A stretch of DNA of 62,987 nucleotides, filler included, from Sluysia triapertura (taxonomy: Eukaryota): the NCBI GenBank assembly GCA_046118255.1. It is 5 parts of 5 records of this genome, joined end to end, with 100 filler letters (N's around TTAATTAATTAA, not from the genome) between each part and the next. Parts side by side here need not be neighbours in the genome. Positions count along the whole stretch, not along the records: positions 24,168 to 34,976 come from JBJNIA010193161.1; 4 more parts are not named here. One strand, 5' to 3'. The first letter of the stretch is position 1; each line of letters begins with the position of its first letter. The position numbers were made by a program, and so were the translations under genes. Positions 23,401 to 35,076 of this stretch are shown one piece after another. The notes beneath the pieces were generated by a model, which had not been told where the DNA came from, searched no databases, and was given only the letters and a program-made list of their open reading frames with translations.

Positions 23401-25437
23401 GTTAAAAAGTGCCCATTTAAATGCAGTAGAGTAAACAGTTCTATTAAATCCAATTACGAAAATTTCGTCATTGTCGTTAACACGTTCAATGTCAAGCGGT
23501 TCAATTGTGACCGGCGCAGCCAAGATTATTAGAAACACATAATTCGAGTAAATTTTGTAAATTCTGTTTTGAATATTATTTCATCAAAATATGCAATACA
23601 TACTGAGAAATTCATTTTAGGCAGTCGGGCAAGCCATATAAAATTAGCGTTGCATTCCACGTGTTAAAAGGTCTTAGATGCGCCCGCCATTAAAAATTGA
23701 AGCAATCATAAAACAACCACAACCAAATACCTCAATGCAAACATTGACACGAATAAATTAAATTATTAAAAACAACAATTCTAAAGAAAAAAGGATCTAA
23801 ACACTCATTAACAAAATCTCCAATAAAAAGCAAAATGTTTCCTTAACTGAGTGGAAAAAGTCAACACTGAAATGATATTAATAAAAATGATCATGTTAAT
23901 AATTACAATTATAATTATTTGTCAAATAATAAGGCCATGCATTAAAACTTATTCTAATTTAAAAAATCCCACAAAAAATAATTATTTAAGGTTTAAAAAT
24001 TTTATGAGAATGAAATTTGGTAAAAAAAAGTAAAAGAAATTATTGTCACAGTTTGTAGCATTATATANNNNNNNNNNNNNNNNNNNNNNNNNNNNNNNNN
24101 NNNNNNNNNNNTTAATTAATTAANNNNNNNNNNNNNNNNNNNNNNNNNNNNNNNNNNNNNNNNNNNNAATATTAAAACTTACCTTTCTTGATGGAGTTGG
24201 TCCCCTTAAATCCTACTTAAATCTTGATTAAAAGTGTCTGATTTTAATTTACTACAGTTTCGTGCGTAGTGTCCCTTCCTACTGCAGTTATGACAGGCAA
24301 TCTCTCCTTCTACGTTAGTTTTAGTTTTATTATCATATTTATGATTTCTTACTGGGCTCTTATTTCTATTTGTAAATTCTTCCTTATTCGGCCACCTTAG
24401 TGGATGTCTTTGCTCAAATTCTCTTGATTCATTGTAATTTCTTGCAAATCCTCTTGCTGTTCCTCTTCCTTGATTATAATCATTTCTTGTTGAGTTAAAA
24501 CTATTTCTCCTATAATTATTACTTCTAAAATTACTATTATTATTATTATTATCTGAAAAAGAGTTATCTTTAAACGTATCATCTCTTAAATTATATCCTG
24601 GACTTCCATCTCTCTTATCATCGTCGCTTACGTTGTTTCTTGCTTCCTTCTTAGATCTCTCTAATATTTTGACTATCGCCTTAAATGAATGATTGTCTAT
24701 TAAATTAACGTAAATAATTAACTCCGGACGAAGTCCGCTTTTAAATTTATCTTATTAGAGTCATTTCCTTCTATCCTCCGAAATCTTAGCTCGAGCTACT
24801 AAACTCTTGAGCGCACACGCACATTCGTATACAGTTTCGAGAGGTTTTTGTTTTCGGATATTCAGCATTCGTGTATAATATTTGCATATGTCGTCCAAAG
24901 CAATTTCTTCCGTGAAAGTGTTAACAAAAGTTCTCCAATTAGTTTTCTTACTACTGCCTACCTCCTTATATGTTTGAATAGCAACACCCGTAAGATAATT
25001 TTGGATTCTCTTAGTTTTCTCTAATTCTGACCAGCCATTAGCCTCTGTTATGCTGTCGTACTCAAAAACAATCGCGCAAATCCTCTTCGGCTCCGTTAAG
25101 CTTACGCATTTCTGGAAATACTACAGCAGGTTTCATATTTTGTGAAAACTGTTTCATGTATTCCTTAAATTCGTTCATCGGTACAGTCATTTTAATGTCT
25201 TCTAACACGACTTTTATTTCTTGTAATGGAAAGCTAATATTATCACTGTAATCTTCTTTAATCTCTATTTCAGAATCGTCTATGTTTAAAAAGTGTTTCT
25301 TAAAAATTCACTTATTACTTATATCAGTTACACTTAAATTACCGTTTAAAATGCTTATCTCTACTTACTTTCTTACTTAATACTAATAAACTTAAATATC
25401 AATAAATACCTCACGTTAGTCCCAATTCGCGTGCCCA
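20450..25437 (-). mobile_element. Ty3/Gypsy LTR retrotransposon, decayed (gag, RT, RNase H, integrase N-terminus), interrupted by unrelated DNA and a gap
   Basis: Gag FKSGLRPE and the CCHC knuckle CHNCSRKGHYARNC (~24250-24296). RT FCVDYGQLN and KCEWANSSVSFLGYIV. RNase H LISYPILRF..FII and KADAL. Integrase HNEILGHL..KT. Possible degenerate tRNA-Lys-like PBS TGGGCACGCGAATTGGGAC at 25437-25419. Confidence 0.9.
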
Positions 25438-25737
25438 AATTTTTCTTGGTGTTTTTCTTAATCTAAAAACCTAACCTACAGCAAAATAATTAATTATTCT
25501 GGGTCCCGTTTAAGTATACGACTTAATAATGGCGTACCTGTAAAATTAAGTGAAAACAATTATCAAAATTAATCGTACAAAAAAATACTTTGCCTGAACT
25601 TAAAAATAATGGGCAAAATCGTCGTTTATGTCAATTAACAATAAATAACTCAAAAACTAATTAAGACGAACGCTAGCTTATGGAATCTCTAAATTAATAT
25701 AAAAAATCAAATAAATAATGGTGGTATAAAAACGTAT

Positions 25738-25905
25738 TGTTAGACTTCGTAAAATGGACTGACCGGGTATCGAACCCGGGACCTTCGATGCGCAGGATGC
25801 GCAGTGCGAATGCTCTACCATTGAGCTATCAGCCCCGTCCAACAATTTCATTTTTAATATATTCAATTATACTACTTGGCACTTTTTAGGCCTTTTACCC
25901 CAGCA
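25738..25905 (-). repeat. tRNA-containing mini-element, copy 2 (best preserved; tRNA-like part 25835-25755)
   Basis: GGGCTGA/TCAGTCC acceptor stem with a G3.U70 pair, A box TAGCTCAATGG, B box GGTTCGATACC, then TTTT. The anticodon arm is disturbed by a TGCGCATC duplication, so it is probably not a functional tRNA. Confidence 0.8.
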
Positions 25906-26386
25906 TTACCTTTGCAATTAATATATTAGCATGGCGTTAGAAATGACTGAACTTTTCGTCCTATTTACGTATTCATTCACAAAAATTTGGTAAATGTTTC
26001 TAAAATATTGGTGTATAAATGTGAGGCACATTTTCTATTGCACCATTTTTTATTGCATGTTTCATATTCAACATGATAAAACAATACTAATTTTACCAAA
26101 ATTCGGCGGGATATATTTTAATTAAGTATCCCTTTTCTTTGATTTTGAATAATGAAACATTAAGACTTAGAGAGATTTAATTCATAAATTTAAAAACGTC
26201 GAACTTCTCCTCTAACGACAGAGACGTGTTAAATTCACAATTTCACAAATAACGAATTTTACGAATAATTTCAAAGTGAATAAGAATCATTTATTGTTGA
26301 TAAACAAACTAATTTTATAGTTTGACCAACTTATTTTCTTTCGAAGTATCTAACATTTATTACATAACAATGTGAGATAATTTCAG

Positions 26387-29300
26387 ATACAAAGCAATTA
26401 CCAGCCCCTGGGAAGCGGAAAAGGATTGGAAATGATCAAGAATGCAAGCAGTCAAAACATCGTTTTCGCTGCTTCTGACAAGCCTCTTTCTGATGATACA
26501 TACTTGTCGTATCCAGATCTTCAGATGTTTCCCACATTAGCAGGAGCCGTTATAGTAAGCTACAATATACCCGGAGTCAGGAATCTCTCTATGCGAGGCG
26601 AGGTTTTGGCAAAGATATTCATGGGTCACGTTAATTACTGGAACGACCCATTGATAAAGCAGGATAACAAGCACGTGCAACTACCTGCAGAGCCCATTAT
26701 GGTGCTAGTTCGCGAGGACGACAGTGGCACGACCTACATCTTTTCAGGAGCACTAAGCGCATTTAGTGCCGACTTCTCTTCAAAATATGGAACATTTTCT
26801 TCGAGTTCCAAGTGGAATCAATCTATGATAAAGTACAAAGGCTACACTACGACTATAATTGCAGGCCTCAATCGAGCCGTGAAGTACTCAATTAGTTACT
26901 TGTCGCAGTCCGAAGTGACAATGTTTAACCTTACTGAGCTGGGTATCATCAACAAGTTCGGCAATGTGGTTTATTCAAGTCTCCAGACTATCCAGGCCGC
27001 CATGAACATTTCTTCGAAGAACTTCAATTCCAGATTCAACATCAACCTCATAAACTCGGACAATCCAATTGCATATCCCATGGCATCTTTTACGTACATA
27101 ATAATTTATTTGACCTCGTTCCCGAAGTGCGATCAAATGATTGAAATGTATCGCTTTATAGAATGGTTCATCAGTGACCCCGCCGCGGATCCCAGCGTAA
27201 TCAAGCACAACATGGTGCCTCTAAGTTCTCAAATAAAATCTTTGATCAAGTTCAATATTCTCGATAAAATGCGATGTCTTAAAAACTCCGAATCGCTATT
27301 TGTATATTTGCTAGTTGAAAAACAAAAAAAAGAAGAGATGTCCAAGGGACTTTCCACTGATTTGATACTGAAAATTATCATCCCCACAATATCCATTGCT
27401 TTTCTGCTAATGGGGATAAGTGGGTCCGTCATGTTCTATAAACAACGAAAAGATATTATCAACAATGTATGGAGAATCCCTTACGAGAAAATGGAATCGA
27501 ACATGTCTCAATCAAACATCATCAGAGTCACATCACACGTATCTGTGCATTCCAACAAAGACGAGAACATCTTGGATGCACTCTTGAAGACTTACAAAAG
27601 CCAAAGCGTCTTACTGAGCAACACTTACATCCGGAATGTGGGCAAGGTCCATCTGAGCTGGAAACATCGAGCAGATCTCATCAAGTTCAGAAGTTTTAGT
27701 CACGTCAATATAACAATGTTCTTCGGGATCACCATATACGACAACTTTTATTGGAATGTGTCAGAGAGTTGTGCCAAGGGCAGCTTATACATCATCTTGC
27801 ACAAATCTGGAGTCACCTTGGACGATTCGGTGAAGTTTTCATTGGCTATCGACTTAGCGAATGGCTTAGAGTATTTACATAAACAACAAGTGGTGCACGG
27901 ACACCTGTCGTCTCACTGTTGCTACTTGGACAAAAAGTGGAACGTGAAGGTCGGAGACTGGAATCTCAACTTGTTCTACGAAGCGACCAAAACGATAAAG
28001 CGCGGTCATGTGAAAGACGAAAGGCATGCAACATTCAAGAATAACGTAGGCGTAGAGCCAAGCACCTTTGACGGCACAGACTTGACAATGCACATTTTCG
28101 ACAGATATAGATTGTGGCAAGCGCCGGAGATCATATTGTTCGACAAATATCTAGAGTTGTCGGACACCACCAGCGATATTTACAGTTACGGAGTGATTCT
28201 AATTGAGATTTGGAACAGAGAAGCTCCATTCAGTGACGAAATCGGCGACAGCTTCAAGACAGAGCTACTGTACCACAACATTGCAACCCACAAACGACTC
28301 CCCGATATTAGAGATTCCATTCCAACTTCTGTTAAGAGTCTGGCTCAATCCTGCATCAACGTGAACCCACCTTTGCGACCTACTGCTTCGGCTGTTCGGA
28401 AGTTAATAAAGACTGCGAATCCGAGCAAAAAGAGCATGCTAGACTGCATGATTGATGCGCTCGATTCTTACATCGTAAATCTCGAAGAGATGGTGCAGGC
28501 TAGGACCCAAGAACTCAATGAATCTCAAGACAAGATGAAGGGATTGCTGTTACAGATGTTGCCCGCCTCCGTTGTGGAGAAGCTGGCTAACAAAGAGCCG
28601 GTCGTTCCTGATTCGTACGAAAGCGTGTCCCTGTACTTTTCTGATATCTGCGGATTCACGAAGAAGTCGTCTAGTTGCACCCCCATGCAGGTAGGACTCA
28701 ATGAAATATGACCATAGTATTTCATCACATTGCGGCAGGGTTTCCCACGTAAAAACCGAGATTAGGAAATAGTGATTGGTTGTTCATATTTTATTTACAC
28801 TGTAAATACATTCATTATATACGACTAAATTGTTTAATCTTTAGGCAGCTGCGGATCCATGGACTCAGCATTAACTCTTCTGTCCAGCTCGGCGAATCCA
28901 GTCAACCGGGCCGGGCTAGCGATCATGTACAAATTCCACATAGTTTCTGTGTTTTCCGTAACGTCGCGATTTTTGGTTCTGATTGGCAATGCTGTTATTT
29001 CTGACAGTGGAACTTGAGGCGGTTCTTTAGAAACCTGACGGCACATAATGCACGTTACCAGATCCTCCTCACCTTTCTTCTTCTTTTTTCTTTTATCGAC
29101 TTTTTTGCCCTTATTTTTTTTATTTGTTTCTGCAATAACTTTTATTTCTTTTGTCATAATTTTCATCTTTATATTGCTATTCATTCCCAAATAATCGCCG
29201 TACCCGCAATAAACGCAGAATTTAGTGCCACAGAAGCGACATCTGCGACTGTCAGCATATGTGAAACAAACTGCAGGATTCCAGACACACATTACATCAT

Positions 29301-30296
29301 AATTTAATCAATTTTATTTTTATTTTATAACAGCTTGATAATTTAAAATTAAAAATGTATTTGAAAGACCAATTCTTGAACAATTCAATCTAAATTTGAC
29401 TTTATGGTTCCCCCTTTATACATTATGTTTCATTCCTGAAAATAAATATGGAAAATAATTGTCTCGTGACATTAAAAATGTCTATTTTATAATTTAAAGA
29501 AAATAAAAGAAAAAACAAGATAATAATTCAATAAAGAACCAAGAAATATTCTCACTTTTTTAGAGGTTGTCAATTTCGGATTTGAAATTAAATGTGAAAG
29601 AATGCATTGAAGTGAGAAGACGTTCTTCGATATCTGAAGGAATTACATATTTCTAGTTAAGATGAAGATGCCATATTGCAAGAAATAAAGTGTTGCCAAT
29701 AAATTGCATTATTAGTTTTGTTGAGTTCATTGCACAGATTGAAGATAATGTATTTTGGAGCTCTCTATTCGGCTTCGATAATTTTTTCAAGGATGGAGAG
29801 TGTAGAGGCAGTAACGATGAATTTTATAGAAATATTTTTTAATATTTGTAGTTTAAACTTTATCAAAATTGTATAAAATTACAGTTCCTAGTAGCTACAT
29901 CAAAATTAGTTCATATTCACTAAATAAAATGTTTAATTGCTCTACTCAATTCAGGTTGTAAACATGCTCAACAAACTCTACTCTTTGTTTGACAGTATTT
30001 GCGAGAGGCTGGACGTGTACAAAGTGGAAACTATAGGTAAGTAGAAGTAGTATGATTCATTATTGCTCTCTTCTTTCACACACACCATCTATTTCAGGAG
30101 ATGCTTACTTTGTGACATCAGGACTGCCTATTCGAAATGGAACTCGCCATCTTACGGAAATAGCGGAGTTTGCCTTAGAAATACGTGAATCTGTAGGTCT
30201 GTATGAGATGCCTCACAATCGCGAGAAAATAGCTATTCGTATTGGCCTTCATACAGGTCCTGTAGTTGCTGGTGTCGTCGGAGTAAAAATGCCTCG
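26387..30296 (+). CDS. Receptor-type guanylyl cyclase with extracellular PstS-like (periplasmic phosphate-binding) domain; partial at both ends
   Basis: Exons 26387-28690, 29955-30036, 30098-30296 with GT-AG and consistent phase. PstS motifs [36 protein letters not shown]. One TM helix. Kinase-homology domain ([22 protein letters not shown]). Coiled coil [17 protein letters not shown]. Cyclase [39 protein letters not shown]. Confidence 0.93.
28834..29292 (-). CDS. Cys-rich small protein (putative zinc-binding, Lys-rich linker) nested antisense in the cyclase intron
   Basis: 152-aa ATG-to-stop ORF, GC-richer than flanking intron DNA. It has CRFC, CVYC and CIMC pairs and a [11 protein letters not shown] stretch, and lies entirely within intron 28691-29954. 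Confidence 0.65.
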   Translation of the reverse strand: MCVWNPAVCFTYADSRRCRFCGTKFCVYCGYGDYLGMNSNIKMKIMTKEIKVIAETNKKNKGKKVDKRKKKKKGEEDLVTCIMCRQVSKEPPQVPLSEITALPIRTKNRDVTENTETMWNLYMIASPARLTGFAELDRRVNAESMDPQLPKD

Positions 30297-31778
30297 GTTA
30301 GTAAAAGAGATAAAAAAGAAAACCGAATCAAAATAAATTGGGAACTTTATAAAATAAATTATGAAATTGTCAGATTTTGTTACTGTAAAATTAAAAATTT
30401 TAAAATTTTTAGAGTTTCCGAGACCTAGATAAATGTTTAAGATATTTGAGTGAAGTATTTGAAATATTTAAAATACTCATCAGATACAATCATTGTTACT
30501 AATATTATAAGATGAATTTGAATTGTTAAAAATTAACATAATGAAGTAGAAAAAGGATCTCTAGCGGTGAAGGTGAAATCATCTATTACCACTTTATTGC
30601 TTTATAAAGTGCTAAACAACTTAACACAACACAACTTAAAACCTTTAAGCATAAAGAAAGATTAAGTCTAAAAAAAGATTAATTAATTAAAATCTTAATT
30701 TTAATTTAATGAAGAACATTTATGTCTTTGTGAATAATGTTTGAATGCGAAATGATGTCAAAGTTGAGACTGTGCGTGCTTTCCTTAATATCTTCGATAA
30801 AAATGTGGAGTGGTGGCTCAGTTCAAGACATCAAATGTTACTACCGAAACATCACATTATAAACCTAGAACTCAAAACATGGGTAACAAAATTCCCAATC
30901 TAAATCACATATTCCTGGATCATTTAATAGTTATTTATGCATCCTGTATCTCACAACTTTTAGAATTACTTAGTTCTTAATATTGCGGGAGAATTTTCTT
31001 ATGCATATGTTAAAAGTCCGGGATGAAATGCGTAGTATTTTCTTTGAGGAGGGAAACAATGAAAATGGTTATAATTAACACTAATTGTTATGTAATGCGT
31101 AATTTTGATCAAAAAATTTTTTATTTTCACTGATTACTGCACAAATAAATGCGTAAAGTATACTAAACAACAAAGCATCTTCGAATTATCGATAGAAAAC
31201 AAAAAAGCGCTATCGCGCTGCGCCGGACTCAAACGGTTAATGCAGATGGTCTGCAGACTCAAACGAATTATATTTTCTACAAAATTAAATTTATATTGCA
31301 TCATAATTCATTAAATTCACGTCATATAATTATATAACATCATCTCACCAAATTCATAAACAGATACAGTAATTAAAATTCAAATACTAAGTAGAAGAAG
31401 AATCAGTAATGAAGCAAAGTCATGCTGCAACTTGCAGACGCCAAACAAATCTTTAATCATAATGATACGTTAAAAGATCATCAAATGGTTCTCCACACAT
31501 CGTGTACTTTGAACATTTATTATCTCAACTTTTACAATCAATAATTCACGTTATTCATTAAACCATTTAATAATAACGGTATTCGACAAATTTTCTAGAT
31601 CACTTACAGAATTAAAAATTTAATATTTCGCAGAACCTAATTCATTTTTCAGGAAGAAATAACAGAAAATATCCGCCTGTAGAATTTTCAGAAGGTCCCT
31701 GTTCCTGCAAGATTGTATGAATTATAGAACGAAAAATAAGTTATTTTTAATTAAAGATATGAGAATTACAATAACCTA

Positions 31779-31847
<69 letters not shown>
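31779..31847. repeat. Palindromic microsatellite (AAT)n(TTA)n
   Basis: About 12 AAT units abut about 10 TTA units, centre near 31816. Confidence 0.9.
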
Positions 31848-33880
31848 GAAAACTCATAACGAAACAATATTATGCAAAATCATTACGGTTTTGTATTGCC
31901 ATTGTTGTAAAGAGTAATTTATATATATTCTAGTTGTAATCTTGTGATAATATAAAGAATATATCGATATTTTGAATTATTTAGGTATTGAATTAAAATT
32001 TGATAATTTGGGAAAATAAAAGTATTAAAAGACACAACAGTTTCTAAGCCAATGAAATGCTAATTCGCCTCACCAGTGCCAAACCGTATTTTATTGGAGC
32101 AAATATACAAACTTGCTGACAAAACATTTACACGATGCCCTTAGTGATTATAATTAAAGCAGTGTTTGCTTATGAAGTGTTTCTTTATTAATGGTCGGTT
32201 GGTCTCTAAACATAGTGAATTAGAGGATGCTAAAGAATTTAGATTAAACGATCTATCACTCGATGAAATACCTCAGCTTAAAATATAAGTAGAATAGAAG
32301 TTTTAGTTGTCTTTAATCATGATATTCTAGTTGAACCTAATTTGAAAATATTAGATAAATTAATTGAGCTTAAAGAAGTTACCGAATAAATAATTTGATT
32401 AGACATTGTCACAGAATTGTTTTCGAAAGATATTAAAGGTAATAATTCAGTTTAAAGTTATAATTAGTATAAAAGGCTTAATTGGAACATGTCTTAGAGA
32501 ACAATACATTTTCGTCAGAGATCCAGACGTCTTCAAACTTGATGTCCAGACTTACTGTGGTACTACTCAGAGATCCAAATAAACTCGTAATCTTTTCAGA
32601 ATCTACATGATATTCTTAGTAAGTTTCTTACACATGATTTTTATCATTTTATTGGTAGCGCATTTATGATTTTATTGAGAAATTGGGGATTTTTGCTTTT
32701 TGAGAAGATCTTAGCTCCATTAATATTATTAAAATCATGCACCACGCACTTAGAAAGAATAATTTTACAAAAACTATAAATAAAATCAATAATAAGCTCA
32801 TGATATCAAAGAATATTCATATGATTTGTGTAAAAGAATGTTTAATTGTAAAACTCAAAATTGATTGGATGAGAAAGTATAAAAGAAGTACTTTTAAAAT
32901 TGTTAATACAGCAACAAAAAAGACAATTATGAAGAAAGTAATTTTTTATTTTATTATTATTTTAAGTTAAAAATTTTAATTATTTTATTTTGTTCATTGT
33001 AAATTCCTAGTTTTTGAAGATTTATTTTAATTCATTTCATATTTAGTTTGTGTTTAGTTGTAATTGTAGATTATTAGTGTTCTCTTAATTTCATTGTAAT
33101 TATGTGACTGTTGGTTATAATATTTATGTGGAATATTTGACTTTTATTCGTAATAATTAATATTTGGAGAGTTAATTTATATTCATTGTAATACTTGCTA
33201 AATTGTATTATTCGAATGTATTTGGGACTAAATCTAATTTTGTTTTTTAAGTTTTGAATTTAAATTTAATTTAAATTTATGCATTATCGTAACAATAAGT
33301 ATTGTTGCAATGATTGTTAAATTTTGATTTTATTATTTTGAATTAGATAGGAATTTGTTTGTCGCGAAACTCATTATTTTGCAGTAATTTCTGAGTGATA
33401 ATAATTTGGATACTCGACGGAAATGAATATTAAATATTAAAATGTGCCGCATTAAAACCGACTCTAGAAAATAAACATCTTCATTAAGCATTCAGATTAA
33501 TTATGACAAATTTCCAATTATCTAAATACTATGTAAACAATCTCATTTTTGTTATGAAATGACAAACAGCATTGCTGCAATATTTCGATTCAATTTTATA
33601 TTTATTTAGCATTTGACTAATTTTATTTTTGATTAATTTTTTGGTTTGGTGTTTAAATTTATTTGTAATTTGGGTACTAACATTTATATATAATGCATTA
33701 TATTTGTATTATATTTTAGTAATTTTTATTGATTTATTGATTTGTAATTGAATGATTATTGATTGTACATTGAGTTATAACTGATTTCGATATTGTGATA
33801 AAGTTAAATATTCTTAGATTAGACTTGTTTAATTTTGTTGTAGAATCGTATTCATTAATTTAATATTAATAATAATAAAA

Positions 33881-34041
33881 TGTTAGTCCTCAATAAATGG
33901 ACTGACCGGGTTTCAAACCGGGACCTCTCTCTTCACAAATTTGCAGTTCGATGCTCTGATCACTGAACTATTAGCTTTGTCTAACAATTTTATTTTATAC
34001 TGTCATTGTTCTAAGTGGCACTTTAGGCCTCTACTTCAACA
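33881..34041 (-). repeat. tRNA-containing mini-element, copy 3
   Basis: tgttag..aaatggactgaccggg..gggacct..gcagttcgatgctc..aacaattt..tggcactttaggcct..caaca aligns with copies 1 and 2. Confidence 0.75.
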
Positions 34042-35076
34042 ATAATAGAATAATAATAATAATATAGTTTGTTCATTATGTCCTTATTTAAATATTTAAA
34101 AATAATCAGGTAATGTTTCTTTAATCACACTCATTCTTCAGTCCGAACAATCTGTACGAGTGGAACTGAAATTAGTCTACATTTATTTGACAAGCAAATT
34201 TGTCTTTCGCATTACCAAAATAATTTTTATTTAGTAATCATGTTTCAGTTAATGGCTATTTCTACTTTTAAACATATCCATTCGATAAGTCAACAAATCT
34301 TTCCGTCAATACGTTGAAATAGTTTTTATCCTCAAATATTTTAATTTGTACACTTATGTTAAAATTGCATGTATTTGAACTTTTTCTGTTAAAGTTTTCT
34401 TGATCAATAATTTCCCCCATTTTATTAGAATTATGAATTGTCTTCACGAACCGTCAGTCGGCATAGTTTATGGTCTATGTTAGGATGGTATCTGATCCTC
34501 TTCGATCCATAGACTTTCGTTCTTGATCAGTGAAAACATACTTGGCAAATACTTTCGCAGTTGTTGGTCTACTAGAAATCTTTCTTCTTTCAGTGTACGT
34601 AAGCCCATGACTGTTTCTTTTATCATTACTTCAGTTCCGAATACCAACAAAATAGAATCAAAGTCCTATTCCATTATTGCATGCAACGTTATAAATCTAC
34701 TTTAAGCACTCTAATATTTTCACCAGTACATATCCGTGAAAGACATATACAGTGTACACAATTGGTAACGCTGCAACTGCTGGAGAGGTCCCAAAAATGA
34801 ACATCCCACAGAAACTCACCCTAAATTCGACTACGAGCTTTATAACTGCAACAACTTTAATATACGCTTTTGGAGCTTCTGGCACCAGACTTGTCCTCAA
34901 TAAGGTGTTTACACTGTCCTCATTTCAATTATGATACTCATAGAGTTCATATTGCTATTTATCTTCACAACCTCGCNNNNNNNNNNNNNNNNNNNNNNNN
35001 NNNNNNNNNNNNNNNNNNNNTTAATTAATTAANNNNNNNNNNNNNNNNNNNNNNNNNNNNNNNNNNNNNNNNNNNN

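Follow-up and report, generated by a model that had tools for sequence, protein, structure and literature searches.

Receptor guanylyl cyclases of animals are defined by their domain order (PMC1435932), and NPR1/GC-A, GC-C, nematode GCY and the sea-urchin speract receptor all carry a transmembrane (TM) helix, a kinase-homology domain, a coiled coil and a class III cyclase in identical order behind an ectodomain of the type I ANF_receptor fold. Ectodomains resembling the bacterial phosphate-binding protein PstS, with the pocket kept, are found on protist and chytrid receptors (Andalucia P0102; the PstS-7tm_3 proteins of Plasmodiophora and Heterosigma; Spizellomyces SPPG_06488), and the papers found hold no functional tests of them; the nearest published account notes in passing the domain PBP_like_2 on one chytrid class C G-protein-coupled receptor (GPCR) (PMC3251606). 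Here we describe a gene of Sluysia triapertura, located in a window of 62,987 nucleotides (the whole stretch analysed, filler included, joined from five parts of assembly GCA_046118255.1). We confirmed it as a genuine invertebrate receptor in which a bacterial-type phosphate-binding domain sits, extracellularly, on a cyclic GMP (cGMP)-making enzyme. It differs from the animal receptors above in that its ectodomain is of the type II PstS fold and most paralogues of its family are catalytically dead. Andalucia P0102, in turn, lacks the pseudokinase and has a cyclase of another type, and the Plasmodiophora, Heterosigma and Spizellomyces receptors have a GPCR output instead of a cyclase.

We examined the piece of the window at positions 24168-34976 (10.8 kb, from JBJNIA010193161.1), which is AT-rich and animal-like and has a single long GC-richer frame inside, on the plus strand. 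This frame, exon A (26387-28690), is internal and open throughout its 2304 bases (768 codons), with an acceptor AG at 26385-26386 and a donor GT at 28691, and its GC content at third codon positions (GC3) is 0.55 against about 0.28 GC in the flanks. It encodes most of the ectodomain, the TM helix, the pseudokinase, the coiled coil and the start of the cyclase, which continues on the same strand in exon B (29955-30036; AG acceptor, donor GTAAGT) and exon C (30098-30296; AG acceptor, donor GTTAGT). The three exons were searched separately, and the HMMER search proposed in the initial annotation returned PBP_like_2 (exon A residues 3-264, 1.3e-17), PK_Tyr_Ser-Thr (exon A, 7e-25) and Guanylate_cyc (exons A-C, B and C included). 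Splicing was inferred by homology with Owenia P0014, on which exons A, B and C correspond to residues 78-865, 866-892 and 894-959, Gly893 coming from a split codon. As residues 130-1010 of the Owenia protein are encoded by one exon and ours are residue-adjacent along it, the phases and borders are right and an unbroken protein is reproduced. The Pfam matches, the TM call and this mapping bear out the single spliced frame, from PstS-like domain to cyclase, that had been postulated.

The stretch 25900-30687 is spanned by one Logan contig (run X1) with zero differences and flat depth, and this run may itself be the source of the assembly; run X2 holds only short, identical, low-depth pieces of the stretch, probably carry-over. 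Exon C ends in a split Arg codon, the start of the MPR arginine, after which the absent YCLFG exon would follow. Motif, tblastn and profile searches found neither the signal-peptide/GAGASFP exon (N-terminal profile's positive control 2e-14) nor the last catalytic exon or exons (C-terminal profile lacking a positive control) within 24168-34976, that is, over 2.2 kb upstream and 4.7 kb downstream of the exons. In complete relatives a hydrophobic leader precedes GAGASFP. The family shares an intron after the PDLQM motif, which is why the first exon is absent from many gene models; the present gene is without this intron and has three cyclase introns absent from Owenia.

The ectodomain (26387-27277, residues 1-297, the first strand and helix missing) contains a Cys248/Cys297 pair and five N-glycosylation sequons. 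Exon A matches the NCBIfam model TIGR00975 (PstS) at 1.2e-52, scoring 179 bits against an equivalog cut-off of 205 with an ectodomain that is incomplete here, and among solved sequences PstS proteins come closest (1e-29), at 25-29% identity. For an AlphaFold model of the ectodomain (pLDDT 93.7) the top 20 Foldseek hits were all phosphate-binding proteins, with TM-scores of 0.80-0.90 (PstS 0.85-0.90), and VIA placed the model on PstS with Z 36.3 and a root-mean-square deviation of 1.8 A, while binders of sulfate, tungstate and molybdate reached about 11 or below. In the model the ectodomain shows a D-type PstS fold. An ANF-type ectodomain (PF01094, type I periplasmic binding protein) was rejected, as there was no Pfam ANF match and the model fits PstS, in line with the fold given in the initial annotation. 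The D-type PstS proteins (E. coli PBP, Xanthomonas PhoX, M. tuberculosis PstS1) share with the receptor both the fold and the phosphate contacts, selectivity Asp included, whereas the receptor is fused to an animal signalling module, bears the glycosylation sequons and is altered at N177 and G179 of the GNxG loop. Nor is the gene a component of a Pst transporter: it is an intron-bearing TM-kinase-cyclase fusion outside any PstC/A/B context, and no permease or ATPase open reading frame (ORF) was found within the piece.

S38, D56, R135, D137, S139, G140 and T141 are the residues that we take to be the phosphate contacts of E. coli PstS. Alignment to E. coli PBP pairs them with S10, D31, R109, D111, S113, G114 and T115 of the present protein, as had been mapped before. 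Ser10 (26414-26416) is Ser in 27 of the 28 animal rows covering the position, and Asp31 (26477-26479), the selectivity aspartate of D-type PstS, is kept in 27/27; R109-x-D111-x-S113-G114-T115 lies at 26711-26731. All six visible first-shell positions, out of eight, are canonical, and so is D137. The contact list of PhoX matches these E. coli contacts (PMC5439949). Owing to its selectivity Asp, PstS discriminates against sulfate by about five orders of magnitude (PMC5381212), and the D-type pocket discriminates against arsenate as well (PMC5381212, PMC13614923).

Next to these conserved residues, T155 and I157 (26849-26857) depart from N177 and the near-invariant G179, according to the family alignment. 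The equivalent of G179 is Gly in 75/79 animal and 98/98 prokaryotic rows, and Ile157 is unique among the 79 animals; at the N177 position Asn is present in 41/79 animal rows, and Thr, as here, is common in the family. Further, the YSIGY motif reads YSISY in this copy, and the nearest relative, P0074 (43-45% identity), likewise departs in this region (Thr).

The conservation counts come from 79 animal ectodomains with a mean identity of 40% and a median column conservation of 0.52, fewer rows covering S38 (27/28) and D56 (27/27). R135 is kept in 79/79, D137 in 71 (plus 5 with Glu), S139 in 73, G140 in 78 and T141 in 67 (plus 11 with Ser). Conservation over these relatives supports a pocket that is phosphate-shaped, as judged from sequence. 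Complete animal members have S-F in the T10/F11 loop (the GAGASFP loop).

The sole hydrophobic helix, the TM helix (27362-27439, residues 326-351), is followed by KQRK. The kinase-homology domain (27584-28420) is a pseudokinase in which HRD has become HGH, DFG has become DWN and the beta-3 lysine is absent. Among solved structures the best relatives of the intracellular part are NPR1 (7e-37) and GC-C (6e-29), with active kinases at 1e-17. A coiled-coil dimerisation helix (28454-28585) is placed by the NPR1 alignment and by a weak match to the HNOBA coiled coil (0.038, residues 702-733). The cyclase starts at 28607-28690 with the first metal-binding Asp753 (28643-28645, SDICG); the GTP-specifying Glu of KVETI, which had been pointed out already, is present in exon B (30027-30029), and the second metal Asp is in exon C (30100-30102, G-DAY). 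Judged by its sequence, the gene would act as a receptor guanylyl cyclase: its domains, from the ectodomain through the one TM helix to the cyclase, follow the order that defines the class, and it has all testable features of the class except the ANF ectodomain.

The gene belongs to a broad protostome family. The PBP_like_2-kinase-cyclase architecture was found in gastropods, chitons, bivalves, Owenia, Lineus, Tubulanus and Priapulus, more than 20 named animals in all, with two or three paralogues in several species; a tardigrade member comprises the ectodomain-TM-kinase part and a Helobdella member a partial ectodomain, and a cluster rich in molluscs with the same domain set is present in the ESM Atlas. 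This range is a lower bound. The survey across Metazoa suggested in the initial annotation revealed an architecture that recurs in protostomes, and also that the gene is no isolated case and that most members are cyclase-dead. All seven cyclase residues are kept by 9/45 animal members; the Cys, Asn and Arg are seen in Owenia, Lineus and Priapulus as well as in six further relatives. In Owenia P0014 and the L007 gene an intact pocket goes together with the full set of seven catalytic residues. In about four fifths of the animal members the cyclase is degenerate and the pocket and pseudokinase are retained; pseudo-cyclases are unusually frequent here. Pockets of the dead-cyclase members retain S38 in 21/21, D56 in 20/20 and R135 in 34/34.

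The sequences are already public under automatic names such as 'atrial natriuretic peptide receptor-like', 'speract receptor' and 'gcy-like', and names of the 'ANP receptor-like' kind derive from the intracellular part alone. We found no description of a PstS-guanylyl cyclase in full-text searches, whose reach excludes most subscription journals, and a paper on the oyster kinome makes no mention of an ectodomain of this kind. The family is apparently undescribed, and the earlier statement that no functionally characterised animal receptor of this kind is known agrees with what we found.

Trees of the ectodomain only (FastTree, and a quick IQ-TREE on a subset) place the animal sequences in one clade (99 in FastTree, SH-aLRT 95 in IQ-TREE), unnamed rows being called 'other eukaryote' or 'prokaryote' by inference from architecture. 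The nearest branch is the PstS-TM-cyclase of the jakobid Andalucia (P0102, support 89), surrounded by PstS-bearing class C GPCRs and other eukaryotic receptors; prokaryotic PstS is set apart, with a support of 69 for the prokaryote group alone. A single animal clade beside protist PstS-receptors makes contamination or recent bacterial transfer unlikely. The simplest reading of these sequences is that the ANF domain of a receptor guanylyl cyclase was exchanged, a single time and no later than the protostome ancestor, for a PstS-like sensor domain of old eukaryotic descent; a transfer far back, into the protostome stem, is a possible alternative origin. The closest prokaryotic kin of the eukaryotic domain are the PstS proteins P0218-P0262, which are 35-43% identical to the Owenia ectodomain and, where named, come from Chloroflexi, and 43/98 prokaryotic rows have a Cys pair like that of the ectodomain. 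PstS-like ectodomains with the pocket kept were also seen in P0002, P0027, P0032, P0049-P0062, P0069, P0092, P0102, P0113, P0133, P0149, P0167, P0178 and P0198, fused to class C GPCRs, cyclases, phosphodiesterase, glutaminase, PARP and TRP-like membrane domains; their named members are protists, and they form a wider pool of candidate eukaryotic phosphate receptors.

By analogy with PstS and with NPR1 and GC-C we suggest, with a probability of roughly 0.55, that phosphate shuts the ectodomain and thereby alters the cGMP output of the receptor. As in PstS, inorganic phosphate would bind in the cleft and close the two lobes, the equivalent of D56 rejecting sulfate. As in NPR1 and GC-C, the receptor would be a dimer, and closure would be relayed via the juxtamembrane helix, pinned by the conserved Cys pair, and the membrane helix to the pseudokinase and coiled coil, and from there to a head-to-tail cyclase pair whose cGMP output would rise or fall. 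Seawater contains about 28 mM sulfate and micromolar phosphate, an excess that the retained selectivity Asp fits. Since body fluids would saturate a pocket of high affinity, the likeliest job would be to read the phosphate of surroundings, food or gut lumen, or, in a detuned version, internal levels. Protist cyclases and class C GPCRs carry the same domain, which therefore already serves as an ectodomain of receptors. The dead-cyclase paralogues that keep the pocket are probably partners of active subunits, or signal via the pseudokinase. For the family as a whole, we regard it as an even bet that it is an ancient protostome one in which a PstS flytrap senses extracellular phosphate and signals through cGMP, active and cyclase-dead subunits cooperating.

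Several observations weigh against phosphate-controlled cGMP synthesis by this gene. Phosphate binding and cGMP output are both predicted from sequence, and the coupling of a monomeric flytrap to a dimeric receptor is a weak point. Two of the eight first-shell positions (T10 and F11) fall in exons beyond the piece, as do three of the seven cyclase residues (the Cys of YCLFG, the transition-state Asn and the Arg), leaving 4/7 visible; the full catalytic set is absent in 36/45 members, two of which are just truncated. Conservation is not pocket-specific, as many of the 42/337 columns conserved at 90% or more lie outside the pocket, and no RNA holder of the gene was found in the sequencing-run search. 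T155 and I157 adjoin the phosphate site and may lower affinity or impede closure, and the Asn of the N177 position, replaced here by T155, counts among the direct phosphate contacts given for PhoX (PMC5439949). The family may also sense phosphate with the present protein as a detuned or non-binding subunit, whether it works at low affinity or provides the catalytic half of a pair in which a cyclase-dead paralogue does the binding. The unique Ile, the Thr at N177, the YSISY motif, the parallel departure of P0074 and the fact that binding-competent dead cyclases are in the majority all speak for such a role; we hold it to be rather improbable, as six canonical first-shell positions and D137 would not be expected after loss of binding along a branch of 0.47-1.0 changes per site.

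The pocket might also bind phosphate or a phosphoryl group while the real signal is a phosphate ester, pyrophosphate, a nucleotide, or a peptide or protein agonist between the ectodomains, with phosphate as constitutive cofactor. Known receptor guanylyl cyclases are mostly peptide-gated (PMC1435932), paralogue expansion suggests more than one ligand, the N177 loop is variable in animals (N 41, T 17, S 7 and I 7 of 79) and fixed in prokaryotes (95/98), and residues conserved specifically in animals lie distant from the pocket (Owenia R68 in 23/23, E335 in 75, R338 in 73). The latter may equally form a dimer or signalling surface, and the GASFP loop walling the buried site is unchanged together with D56, which in PstS leaves room for a bare anion only (PMC5381212), so we consider another agonist unlikely, if worth keeping in mind. 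That the locus is a pseudogene or a fragment without first and last exons appears very improbable. Neither exon was found on either side, retroelement debris lies on the flanks, and the run search gave no RNA; against this stand the open 2304 bases, the canonical in-phase splice sites, the intact visible catalytic residues and the high GC3, and the piece is merely 10.8 kb long while introns of the Priapulus orthologue reach 2-7 kb. The bacterial identity of the best solved matches to the ectodomain would suit a misassembled chimera, contaminating DNA or a bacterial pstS acquired recently by this one genome. The fusion lies within one exon on one contig of flat depth, the same architecture occurs in the other animals, and the animal ectodomains group in a single clade (SH-aLRT 95) with eukaryotic receptors around it and prokaryotic PstS elsewhere in the tree; we have rejected chimera, contamination and recent transfer alike as explanations of negligible probability. 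The findings that had been named as decisive and were open to check, an ANF-type fold or a prior characterisation, did not appear.

How extracellular phosphate is detected is unknown in mammals (PMC10104895), and metazoan phosphate sensing is treated as unresolved (PMC3280997). The family offers a directly testable candidate phosphate sensor, with a known fold, a mutational toolkit (D56N, R135A) and an easily measured output, and its recognition corrects a systematic mis-annotation. If phosphate does control the cyclase, this would be, for animals, the first ligand-gated receptor dedicated to phosphate, and a single protein chain that naturally converts phosphate into cGMP; the idea would extend to the PstS-bearing GPCRs and cyclases of protists. 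Further, we speculate that it would then bear on feeding, settlement and the mineralisation of shells and tubes in molluscs and worms. Vertebrate sensing is left unexplained, no named deuterostome, insect, nematode or cnidarian member being among the matches listed, many of which are unnamed.

The remaining features of the piece are mostly repeats. On the minus strand, 24209-25307 holds broken gag-like frames of a long terminal repeat retrotransposon in three pieces, with a CCHC zinc knuckle at the end (zf-CCHC, 1.7e-4), and 34271-34924 holds short open stretches that resemble a decayed retroelement pol, without Pfam support. A tRNA-like element at 25755-25835 (minus strand; tRNA-Arg(GCG) by ARAGORN) has a second copy at 33895-34030, with 75% identity over 144 bases, and the pair is probably a tRNA-derived short interspersed element. 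Antisense in the first cyclase intron lies an ORF of 152 amino acids (28834-29292, minus strand) with a Cys cluster, a lysine run and near single-copy depth; it has no Pfam match, Atlas leads below 0.9 point to RING/PHD/FYVE fingers, and it is possibly a nested exon or a transposon remnant. Downstream of exon C, 30500-31235 is a repeat of very high copy number, the contig depths adding up to as much as about 190,000 against 20, which is also present in run X2, and at 31779-31847 (AAT)13 is directly followed by (ATT)11, forming a palindromic microsatellite.

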